Below, one piece after another: positions 13,439 to 24,111 of a stretch of DNA of 64,000 nucleotides. Position 1 is the first letter of the stretch. Each line of letters starts with the position of its first letter. The notes below the pieces were generated by a model that worked only from the letters and a program-made list of their open reading frames with translations, did no database searches and was not told the origin of the DNA. The position numbers and the translations under genes are program-made. The stretch covers positions 124,001 through 188,000 of IMG/VR virus record IMGVR_UViG_3300044712_001937; one strand, given 5' to 3'.

Positions 13439-13526
13439 GTCGGGTTGCGTGAGTGGTCGAAACGGGGGTTCTGCAAAAGCTCTATTCCGAAAGGTACACA
13501 TTGGTTCAAATCCAATACCCGACTCA
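13439..13526 (+). tRNA. tRNA-Cys(GCA), long variable arm
   Basis: gtcgggt/acccgac acceptor, ct-gca-aa loop, U73. Confidence 0.85.
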
Positions 13527-13530
13527 ATAT

Positions 13531-13620
13531 TCTTGGGTTGCTTTAGTTGGTCGAAAAGTCCAGACTGTTAATCTGGTGAGATTTATCTCCATCATAGGTT
13601 CGAATCCTATCCCAAGAGCA
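13531..13620 (+). tRNA. tRNA-Asn(GTT), long variable arm
   Basis: tcttggg/cccaaga, ccaga-ctgttaa-tctgg, V-arm gagat-tt-atctc. Confidence 0.85.
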
Positions 13621-13687: not shown

Positions 13688-14272
13688 ATGAGTAATTTAA
13701 AAAATAATATCTTAAAATTAAGAGATGAAGGTAAAACATATAGTGAAATAAGTAAATTATTAAATTGTGCAAAAAGTACGATTTCTTATTATTGTAAATT
13801 ATATGGAAAATCAACTATTATTAGCAATAAAATAAATAATAGTGATATTTTATTATTTCAAGAGTTATATGATAATTATCATTCAGTTAATAAAGTTGCA
13901 TTTATTACAAATAGGTCTAAATCTACAATTTTAAAATATGTTAAAACTATAAAAAGAAATAAACAAACGTATGATGAAATAAAAAAAAATAACATTAAAT
14001 ATGTTAATAACTTTAGAAAAAGATTGAAAATAAAATCAGTTGATTATAAGGGCGGAAAATGTATTAAATGTGGTTATAATAAATGTATAGCAGCATTAGA
14101 ATTTCATCATAGAAATCCAAATAATAAAGATTTTGAAATTTCATCATCAAAAATTTTATCTTGGAATAAAATAAAAATTGAATTAGATAAATGTGATTTA
14201 GTTTGTAGTAATTGTCATAAAGAAATTCATTGGGATGTATCCCCTCTGCCTGATAAGCAGTTGGAAGGGTAA
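13688..14272 (+). CDS. HNH endonuclease with N-terminal HTH
   Basis: GGKCIKCGYNKC..ALEFHH...CSNCHKEIH. Confidence 0.85.
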   Translation: MSNLKNNILKLRDEGKTYSEISKLLNCAKSTISYYCKLYGKSTIISNKINNSDILLFQELYDNYHSVNKVAFITNRSKSTILKYVKTIKRNKQTYDEIKKNNIKYVNNFRKRLKIKSVDYKGGKCIKCGYNKCIAALEFHHRNPNNKDFEISSSKILSWNKIKIELDKCDLVCSNCHKEIHWDVSPLPDKQLEG

Positions 14273-14310
14273 TTTGGTTACATAAGGGTTCAATTCCCTT
14301 CTTCCCAACT
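14231..14310 (+). tRNA. Atypical tRNA-Ile(GAT)-like RNA lacking canonical D-arm
   Basis: tgggatg/cttccca acceptor; ctgc-ctgataa-gcag; T-arm aaggg-ttcaatt-ccctt; D-loop-like aatttggtta placed 3' of anticodon arm. Confidence 0.6.
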
Positions 14311-14317
14311 AAAATAT

Positions 14318-14402
14318 AGTGACGTGGATGAATGGTTTAGTCACCAGTCTGATACACTGGATTCTTAGGAATAATATGGGTTCGAATCCCATCGTCACTA
14401 CA
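14318..14402 (+). tRNA. tRNA-Ile(GAT), long variable arm
   Basis: agtgacg/cgtcact; ccagt-ctgatac-actgg; V-arm attc-ttag-gaat. Confidence 0.85.
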
Positions 14403-16225: not shown

Positions 16226-16906
16226 ATGGCAAGAAAAGAAAAACAATACCATTTCATTTATAAAACTACTAATATTTTAACTGGTAAATATTATTATGGA
16301 ATGCATAGTGGCAATAATCTGGAGGATGGTTATTTAGGTTCAGGTAAAAGATTAAGACGTTCTATAAATAAATATGGCAAAGAAAACCATAAACGTGAAA
16401 TTATTGAATTTCTTCCGGATAGAAAATCTTTAATTGAACGTGAGAAAGAAATTGTTAATTTAAATGAAATTGCAAAAGTAGATTGCATGAATTTAGTTGT
16501 TGGTGGAAATGGTGGATTTAATGTAGAAATTGTGAAAAAGGGAAGATTAGCTGTTGATAATATTATGATAACAAGATATGGTATTAATTGGCGTTCTATT
16601 TTAGCTAAAAAAACTTTTAGTGATTTATCAATCAATAAACGTAATGAAATTAATAAAAAAATAATTGAAACCAATAAAAAAAATGGATTTACTTATGATA
16701 ATTTTAAAAATAAAAAGCATACCGAAGAAACAAGGAAAAAATTGAGTAAATCAAGAAAAGGAACAGGAATTGGTAATAAAAATTCACAATTTGATACATG
16801 TTGGATTACTAAAAATGGTATTAATAAAAAAATAAAAAAAGAAAATTTAATTTTATATTTAAAAGATAATTGGATTAAAGGTAGAAAATTAAAATGCATT
16901 CTATAG
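16226..16906 (+). CDS. GIY-YIG (Seg-like) homing endonuclease with NUMOD3
   Basis: FIYKTTN..TGKYYYGMH...YLGSG; KKHTEETRKKLS. Confidence 0.9.
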   Translation: MARKEKQYHFIYKTTNILTGKYYYGMHSGNNLEDGYLGSGKRLRRSINKYGKENHKREIIEFLPDRKSLIEREKEIVNLNEIAKVDCMNLVVGGNGGFNVEIVKKGRLAVDNIMITRYGINWRSILAKKTFSDLSINKRNEINKKIIETNKKNGFTYDNFKNKKHTEETRKKLSKSRKGTGIGNKNSQFDTCWITKNGINKKIKKENLILYLKDNWIKGRKLKCIL

Positions 16907-16970
16907 CTTAACTGGTAAAGCACATCCTTTGTAACGATGGGAAGCGGTTCGAGTCCGATAGAATGCTCTA
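16896..16970 (+). tRNA. Atypical tRNA-Thr(TGT)
   Basis: gcattcta/tagaatgc 8-bp acceptor; tt-tgt-aa loop with closing mismatch; weak T-stem. Confidence 0.55.
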
Positions 16971-24035: not shown

Positions 24036-24111
24036 GGCTCTATAGCTCAATTGGTCAGAGTGACAGTCTCTAAAACTGGAGGTTATGGGTTCGAACCCCA
24101 TTAGAGCCACA
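24036..24111 (+). tRNA. Amber suppressor tRNA (anticodon CTA)
   Basis: ggctcta/tagagcc; cagt-ct-cta-aa-actg; canonical D and T arms; A73. Confidence 0.9.

Follow-up and report, generated by a model that had tools for sequence, protein, structure and literature searches.

We identified a tRNA-like gene with a rearranged core in a 64-kb window of a viral genome, positions 124001–188000 of the 364,702-bp IMG/VR record IMGVR_UViG_3300044712_001937, which carries direct terminal repeats. The gene occupies positions 14231–14308 of the window. Judged by its sequence and by those of its relatives, it most likely encodes a functional elongator tRNA-Ile(GAU) with a permuted core, in which the D-loop follows the anticodon arm; the carrier is a jumbo phage of 365 kb from the rhizosphere. 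Our confidence in the fold is high; for charging and decoding it is good but indirect. An earlier note on this DNA had described a rearranged tRNA fold with the D-loop on the 3′ side of the anticodon arm, and this description is supported by covariation among homologues, by the match of the displaced segment to ordinary D-loops and by the rejection of a competing hairpin.

Architecture of the gene

The gene is composed of the following segments (window coordinates and strand).

14231–14308, plus: whole gene, putative tRNA-Ile(GAU) with permuted core and without D hairpin (Rfam tRNA 30.8 bits; covariance model R2 91.6 bits; homologue alignments A1–A5)
14231–14237, plus: 5′ strand of the acceptor stem (partners 14301–14307; U·U at 14236/14302)
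14238–14240, plus: connector U8 A9 U (TAT), identical in 64 of 64 distinct members (within columns 6–11, which the search pattern fixed); numbered by presumed equivalence to canonical tRNA
14241–14243, plus: 5′ strand of helix X (CCC), in place of canonical nt 23–25 (partners 14267–14269)
14245–14261, plus: anticodon arm (stem 14246–14249/14257–14260, U·U at 14245/14261, loop 14250–14256 with GAT at 14252–14254)
14262–14266, plus: purine-rich linker from the anticodon stem to helix X (TGGAA in the window copy; family consensus A/U-GAAA)
14267–14269, plus: 3′ strand of helix X (GGG), in place of canonical nt 10–12, placed by covariation, RNAalifold and mutual information
14270–14281, plus: relocated D-loop (A14-like 14271, R15-like 14272, G18 G19-like 14276–14277, U20-like 14278, A21-like 14280)
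14282–14283, plus: A and U preceding the T-stem (U 14283 resembles Y48 and would be the Levitt partner of 14272)
14284–14300, plus: T-arm (stem 14284–14288/14296–14300, loop TTCAATT)
14301–14308, plus: 3′ strand of the acceptor stem (14301–14307) and discriminator A73 (14308)

Direct reading confirmed that only 8 nt (14238–14245) lie between the acceptor and anticodon stems, as the earlier note had observed. The anticodon loop, which it had called intact together with A73, contains U33, GAU (14252–14254) and A37, and the D-loop-like stretch and normal T-arm that it had read behind the anticodon arm are present at 14270–14281 and 14284–14300. CCA is not encoded by the gene; A73 is followed by CTA instead. 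U 14240 stands opposite U 14270 and could form a non-Watson-Crick pair resembling 13·22. The purine-rich linker may take part in groove triples.

Homologues of the gene

A conserved protein encoded 5 kb upstream was used as bait and gave 29 loci from related jumbo phages, in five of which blastn detected copies of the element. These first copies showed compensatory changes in the acceptor stem (A-U replacing U-A at pair 1-72), in the anticodon stem (inversion of three pairs), in the T-stem and in the helix 14241–14243/14267–14269. A covariance model built from them (R1) retrieved Ile-UAU, Arg-ACG and Arg-UCU members in the same phage group. The first ten homologues came from sister jumbo phages. 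A second model (R2) added Arg-UCU and Arg-UCG members in one more relative. A degenerate pattern derived from the shared motifs matched at least 117 IMG/VR contigs. Of these pattern-selected loci, 80 were fetched for testing with R2, which confirmed 70; the other ten gave no model match and were discarded as chance pattern matches. Together with the earlier loci this amounts to 89 R2 matches scoring 50–99 bits, 64 of them distinct. The covariance-model search proposed in the earlier note thus returned 64 distinct homologues with a covarying helix around the anticodon arm. Since all of them keep the layout with compensatory changes, the architecture goes far beyond chance.

Two lower-scoring model hits were excluded, L024:14678 as an ordinary tRNA-Phe and L045:1484–1571 as a class-II tRNA-Leu. 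An exact pattern taken from the window copy had no match in IMG/VR, and peptide patterns from the protein of the overlapping HNH-type open reading frame (ORF; see below) found no relatives. Locus L044 contains divergent Arg-UCU and Arg-UCG members 85 nt apart (1501–1580 and 1666–1745; G023:C1:9912–10156). Their relocated loops are longer (TAAC-GGA...), and one of the two has G replacing U ahead of helix X. Such divergent members show that the search pattern did not cover the whole breadth of the family.

Helix X and covariation

Helix X is formed by alignment columns 11–13 with 37–39, and in the alignment of the 64 distinct sequences 99% of its cells are paired. Pair 12-38 occurs in all four Watson-Crick types (U-A 21, C-G 17, A-U 13, G-C 11, with U-G in 2), and pair 13-37 is C-G in 50 sequences, G-C in 11 and U-A in one. 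Pair 11-39 was fixed by the search pattern, yet it is U-A in L030 and A-U in the Streptomyces phages, which were found by BLAST and not selected by the pattern. All three pairs are changed on both sides. In the acceptor stem this holds for seven of seven pairs, with U-A, A-U, G-U, C-G and G-C at 1-72; the anticodon-stem pairs covary, and the T-stem is 99% paired with covariation in four of five pairs. The covariation of the helix that encloses the anticodon arm is as strong as that of the canonical stems.

Over the whole proposed structure 93.4% of the cells are standard pairs, compared with 62.7% in column shuffles and 38–47% with slid partners. Given the alignment but no structure, RNAalifold arrives at helix X on its own and places no hairpin in the relocated loop. 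In a mutual-information analysis of 3,321 column pairs with average product correction (APC), pairs 12-38 and 13-37 rank 3 and 13, and 15 of the 17 top pairs are pairs of the model.

The earlier note had paired ccct with aggg (14242–14245/14266–14269). A covarying helix does enclose the anticodon arm, but the register of that proposal is off by one nucleotide; the homologues fix it at 14241–14243/14267–14269. In the window copy alone both registers are possible because of a run of four C's, with −20.5 kcal/mol for the earlier register and −18.5 kcal/mol for helix X, a slight preference for the former that does not decide between the two. The earlier register fails in the homologues; in L028, for example, the A in column 12 would oppose a G.

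The relocated D-loop and isotype identity

Helix X is followed by the motif TAAT-TGG-N-N-A-C (overlapping columns 39–49, which the pattern fixed). The motif is nearly invariant in the family and lies in the 22–23-nt region preceding the T-stem. It reads A14, R15, two pyrimidines, G18 G19, N20 and A21, and differs hardly at all from the D-loops that ordinary tRNAs for Ile and Arg have in sister phages. The window copy has one additional U in this loop.

The anticodons of the family are limited to Ile (GAU, UAU, CAU) and Arg (UCU, ACG, CCU, GCG, UCG). U33 and A37 are invariant throughout, and A73 is present in 39 of 39 Ile-type members. Directly behind GG stands a base that is U in each of the 39 distinct Ile-type members, whether their anticodon is GAU, UAU or CAU, and A in each of the 25 Arg members, a rule that the copies from cultured phages obey as well. 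The strongest mutual-information signal outside the helices connects anticodon nucleotide 35 with this base. In bacteria, Arg identity involves A20, the main determinant for arginyl-tRNA synthetase (ArgRS), and C35, and the Ile identity set includes A73 and U20 (D20) (PMC9976931). At the level of sequence, the base after GG matches the position-20 identity elements of bacterial isoleucyl-tRNA synthetase (IleRS) and of ArgRS. Columns 42 and 56, which would correspond to the Levitt pair R15/Y48, contain A-U in 60 sequences, G-C in two and other combinations in two; the signal for a contact between R15 and the pyrimidine before the T-stem is weak but consistent.

Proposed structure

Based on these data we propose the following architecture. 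Compared with a cloverleaf, two segments would be swapped, nt 10–21 (5′ strand of the D-stem and D-loop) being placed after nt 22–43 (3′ strand of the D-stem and anticodon arm). In the presumed mapping the order would be U8 A9, then 22–25, 26 and 27–43, the linker, 10–13 and 14–21, 46–48 and the T-arm. The 3-bp D-stem-like helix would close round the anticodon arm in a three-way junction and stack on it. The D-loop would emerge on the 3′ side, from where GG could dock on the T-loop, A14 on U8 and R15 on Y48. In three dimensions all layers of the canonical L core would be kept, and the strand connectivity alone would differ. An L shape is plausible because the joins 9-22, 43-10 (through the purine linker) and 21-46 connect neighbouring layers of the core.

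Host IleRS would charge the tRNA through GAU, A73 and U20. The gene could have originated by duplication and deletion of segment 10–43, and the window copy may have spread with the adjacent HNH gene. Beyond the window copy, it is likely that phages possess a natural class of fully functional non-cloverleaf tRNAs for Ile and Arg, with a rebuilt L core that host IleRS, ArgRS, EF-Tu and ribosomes accept. The altered core may persist by escaping recognition, for instance by tRNA-targeting defence nucleases or by homing endonucleases that cut canonical tRNA genes.

Recognition by tRNA models and class membership

The Rfam tRNA model (RF00005, clan CL00001) matches 14231–14308 with 30.8 bits (E = 0.0038 in 12.5 kb, model positions 1–71). 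This score is above the gathering cut-off of 29 bits but marginal, with neighbouring tRNAs at 42–70 bits. Acceptor stem, anticodon arm and T-arm all align to the model; 4 nt take the place of 15 D-arm positions, and the variable region has an insert of 19 nt. ARAGORN calls neither the window copy nor any other member of the family, in line with the expectation of the earlier note that scanners would miss the gene.

The window copy has the general characters of a tRNA: a 7-bp acceptor stem with discriminator, a 5-bp T-stem with a 7-nt loop of T-psi-C type, and a 7-nt anticodon loop with U33 and a purine at position 37. The cloverleaf D-arm hairpin (nt 9–26) is absent from this copy and from all other members. 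With the family it shares the TAT connector, the 3-bp helix, the TAAT-TGG loop and GAU combined with U after GG. It does not belong to class II, having no D arm and a candidate hairpin that shows no compensatory change in the 64-sequence alignment and is not predicted by RNAalifold. The short connector (8 nt) is typical of D-armless tRNAs, but G18 G19 are retained and the variable region is not short. The 5′ and 3′ acceptor strands covary in normal order, unlike in permuted genes of the Cyanidioschyzon merolae type.

Gap-filling and charging

ARAGORN finds 55 tRNA genes in the complete relative G022 (327 kb), covering 19 amino acids and none of them for Ile. This phage carries relocated-loop Ile-GAU and Ile-UAU genes, which would supply Ile, the sole amino acid absent from the ARAGORN set. 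Locus L024 is without a canonical Arg-ACG gene; the relocated form is found directly after Arg-UCG, in the slot of the canonical gene in L028. Similarly, L030 is without a canonical Arg-UCU gene and has a relocated Arg-UCU ahead of Arg-CCU in the array. The relocated-loop Ile(GAU) gene of L030 adjoins a D-arm-bearing tRNA-Ile(GAU), as in the window.

No PF00133 (class-Ia, IleRS-type) synthetase was found in the phage's own genome, so charging would need the host enzyme. The genome does encode a CCA-type nucleotidyltransferase of the PolyA_pol family. The PolyA_pol domain lies outside the window (G000:C1:342623–343009) in a frame of 749 aa, which is unusually long for a CCA-adding enzyme.

Overlap with an endonuclease gene

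The gene is part of a tRNA array at 13.4–20.4 kb of the window, with 20 ARAGORN-called genes and homing-endonuclease-like ORFs between them. Its two neighbours are the following.

13688–14272, plus: HNH-type homing-endonuclease-like ORF of 194 aa, whose stop TAA (14270–14272) and last 14 codons lie inside the tRNA gene
14318–14401, plus: second tRNA-Ile(GAU), 84 nt, with D arm and unusually long variable arm (ARAGORN; Rfam 57.5 bits, 12-nt insert in the variable region)

The latter is the adjoining Ile(GAT) tRNA mentioned in the earlier note, and ARAGORN calls it at these coordinates; a gap of 9 nt separates it from the gene at 14231–14308. The 194-aa ORF has a C-terminal Cys/His motif. Pfam finds only N-terminal helix-turn-helix domains in it, and its DNA relatives are annotated as HNH endonuclease. 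A homologous ORF overlaps the tRNA gene by 33–42 nt in all five jumbo-phage Ile-GAU members and in no other member. The overlapped ORF tails vary between relatives in length and in residues. The RNA pairs persist where these tails differ, and an ORF of this kind is absent from most members; the conservation can therefore not be due to the overlap. Nor can protein-coding constraint produce the compensatory changes in four helices.

In the jumbo-phage clade the shared overlap suggests that the endonuclease gene and the permuted tRNA-Ile move as one cassette. Copies in phages of unrelated hosts are 76–85% identical, which travel as one cassette would fit. One may speculate that some enzyme cuts canonical tRNA-Ile genes and that the permuted allele is resistant to it. 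The stop codon of the HNH ORF coincides with U, A14 and R15 of the relocated D-loop (window 14270–14272; L028:13869–13871); the A/G variation at R15 gives either TAA or TAG, so that the stop is kept in both cases.

Points against the proposed tRNA and alternative explanations

Several observations weigh against a working tRNA with a permuted core. Helix X is only 3 bp long, and the single-sequence minimum-free-energy fold of the window copy is not tRNA-like and no better than shuffles (z = −0.26). Because columns 6–11 and 39–49 were set by the wide search pattern, their invariance proves nothing. The model itself guided alignments A4 and A5, and since the sequences are related the cell counts overstate the number of independent events. 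The equivalence to the canonical three-dimensional core rests on textbook tRNA geometry. The public runs that hold this DNA are all DNA metagenomes (rhizosphere, soil, freshwater) and include no RNA runs. The 5′ 42 nt of the tRNA gene also code for the HNH ORF. Finally, the window copy has U·U mismatches at 6-67 and 27-43 and is redundant with the D-arm-bearing tRNA-Ile(GAU) 9 nt downstream. With two mismatches and this redundancy it could be a less fit member of the family, and selection on it may be weaker than on the copy of G022, for instance.

A tRNA-like RNA could adopt the permuted fold without decoding and act as a decoy for tRNA-targeting nucleases or synthetases of the host, as a regulator or as a processing signal of the array. 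We regard this as unlikely. The restriction of the public runs to DNA metagenomes and the duplication of a neighbouring D-arm-bearing tRNA-Ile(GAU), in the window as well as in L030, are compatible with such a role, and a neutral variant of structure would not be expected to occur in two isotypes only. However, the anticodon loop obeys tRNA rules, with U33 and A37 invariant, and the synthetase identity bases follow the anticodon. Moreover, relocated-loop genes are the sole Ile genes in the complete phage G022, which supplies the other 19 amino acids, and they occupy the slots of absent canonical Arg genes in L024 and L030.

It is very improbable that the gene encodes a D-armless tRNA with a variable-arm hairpin of class-II type, GUAA/UUAC, between 14269–14272 and 14278–14281. 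Four Watson-Crick pairs can indeed be drawn in the window copy and in other members with UUAC (−17.1 kcal/mol), and long variable arms occur on neighbouring tRNAs of the same phage. In the family, however, the 5′ side (GTAAT) hardly varies, and the free changes on the 3′ side (TCAC, ACAC, ATAC, AATC, ATG) are not compensated. L030 breaks two of the four pairs, and its A in column 39 pairs with a compensating U in column 11. In addition, G 14269 is already engaged in the covarying helix X, and the hairpin is missing from the RNAalifold prediction.

A decaying tRNA pseudogene, or conservation merely as the 3′ end of the HNH gene and a target-site scar, is hardly credible, for although the ORF overlaps by 42 nt (with overlap in five of five jumbo-phage Ile-GAU copies), the window copy has two stem mismatches and an intact Ile(GAU) gene lies 9 nt away, the overlapping ORF is absent from most members, RNA pairs are kept where ORF tails vary, and the family occurs in phages of three bacterial phyla. 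For the family this explanation is already contradicted.

Distribution and annotation

Among the matches listed, the IMG/VR contigs that carry a member are 5 kb to 413 kb long. A member is also present in about 45 Streptomyces phages (Stanwilliamsviridae), at a spot that is unannotated except in EGole (MK494112.1, 75265–75341; L173). There the gene with anticodon GAU is labelled tRNA-Leu (UUA) in GenBank, and about 44 sister records have no annotation at this spot. A nucleotidyltransferase gene ends 14 nt upstream of the EGole member. Further carriers are one cultured and one uncultured crAss-like phage, Microbacterium phage Zooman and Agrobacterium phage Atu_ph04. The GenBank records of the cultured ones likewise do not annotate the gene. 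In Kehishuvirus tikkala the member fills an unannotated gap of 90 nt from tRNA-Trp to tRNA-Met, and in Zooman it is located between annotated tRNA-Arg genes. The carriers are phages of Actinomycetota, Bacteroidota and Pseudomonadota.

We also searched one genome per species from 185,579 bacterial and archaeal species (GTDB). A stricter pattern occurred in 13 contigs, ten of which were confirmed by the model; the three loci without a model match, including the sole Mb-sized contig, were rejected as chance pattern hits. All confirmed contigs are metagenome-assembled (713 bp to 400 kb) and none is from an isolate genome, which fits phage DNA binned into metagenome-assembled genomes. As far as these sequences reach, the family is restricted to phages.

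Comparison with known tRNAs

The family has much in common with canonical tRNA-Ile and tRNA-Arg (RF00005), namely the 7-bp acceptor stem, anticodon arm, T-arm, discriminator, U8, the GG of the D-loop, the identity bases and the setting in an array. It differs from them in that the D-stem strands flank the anticodon arm, the D-loop is fused to the variable region and the junction is three-way instead of four-way.

In the permuted and split tRNA genes of Cyanidioschyzon merolae and Nanoarchaeum, the 5′ and 3′ halves are separated and an archaeal or eukaryal splicing endonuclease restores the cloverleaf. They share a non-canonical segment order with the phage family. In the phage family, in contrast, both acceptor ends keep their places in line and the segments are permuted internally; the mature phage RNA itself must therefore be non-cloverleaf. 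The 3′ tRNA-like structures of plant viruses also achieve a tRNA-like L through a different strand connectivity. They are recognised by synthetases, have a pseudoknotted acceptor, are part of genomic RNA and do not decode; there is no sequence relationship to the phage family.

A short acceptor–anticodon connector and a helix beyond the anticodon stem are also found in the D-armless mitochondrial tRNA-Ser(AGY) of mammals, in nematode mitochondrial tRNA-Ser and in the mini HisT of E. coli. These tRNAs have lost the D-loop and its contact with the T-loop, have a Y or flexible shape and are organellar, with the exception of mini HisT, which is synthetic; translation in E. coli can make use of a tRNA that lacks the D arm (PMC7609411, PMC11551756). 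The phage family, by contrast, keeps a constrained D-loop elsewhere, has a long variable region and belongs to bacterial viruses. Class II tRNAs (Leu, Ser, Tyr), allo-tRNAs and nev-tRNAs resemble it in having more than 20 nt from the anticodon stem to the T-stem. They possess a D arm and a covarying hairpin, whereas the additional nucleotides of the phage family are a D-stem strand and the D-loop. Allo-tRNAs occur in phages too; the study that reports them describes 8/4 and 9/3 cloverleaves only (PMC5389517).

According to a 2024 study all known bacterial tRNAs are cloverleaves, and the structural diversity of cytosolic tRNAs is one of arm length only (PMC11551756). A 2020 review of non-canonical tRNAs contains nothing similar and does not mention phages (PMC7609411). 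In a full-text literature search of open-access papers and bioRxiv, such a tRNA was described nowhere, although a subscription journal may hold an earlier report. The family can best be regarded as a new structural variant of tRNA with a permuted core and a relocated D-loop, confined to phages and to tRNAs for Ile and Arg.

If the proposed function is correct, this would be the first known non-cloverleaf decoder in a bacterial translation system, missed by gene finders, and a natural counter-example to the cloverleaf-only rule that works with bacterial machinery. It would mean that the tRNA core tolerates a changed strand connectivity, which bears on whether RNase P, the CCA-adding enzyme, modification enzymes, synthetases, EF-Tu and the ribosome read shape or topology. 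The family could offer a natural scaffold for orthogonal tRNAs in synthetic biology. The tRNA complements of phages would be under-counted, with effects on analyses of codon usage, host prediction and recoding. The cultured carriers make these predictions testable at the bench.

Other tRNA genes of the phage

Nine tRNAs of the window phage that are not Leu, Ser or Tyr are 84–96 nt long (Cys, Asn, Ile, Gln, Glu, Val, Trp, Lys and His-AUG). They are located at 13439–13525, 13531–13619 and 14318–14401 of the window and at 104574, 106791, 107847, 109731, 120697 and 219501 of G000:C1. In the Cys, Asn and Ile tRNAs the additional 12–14 nt form a long variable arm. Class-II-like arms are unusual there and might affect which synthetase charges these tRNAs.

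A tRNA at 24036–24110 (70 bits) has the anticodon CUA of an amber suppressor and is called 'Pyl' by ARAGORN; G022 has one too. It may indicate TAG recoding in part of the genome. At L028:13972–14042, right behind the relocated-loop Ile gene, ARAGORN reports a 'tRNA-???' with a two-base anticodon (tg), and G022 has a second call of this kind ('aa'). These may be further odd tRNAs or artefacts. A GIY-YIG/NUMOD3 homing-endonuclease-like ORF at 16226–16906 ends 11 nt into tRNA-Thr (16896–16968) and is the second endonuclease ORF that reads into the 5′ end of a tRNA gene.

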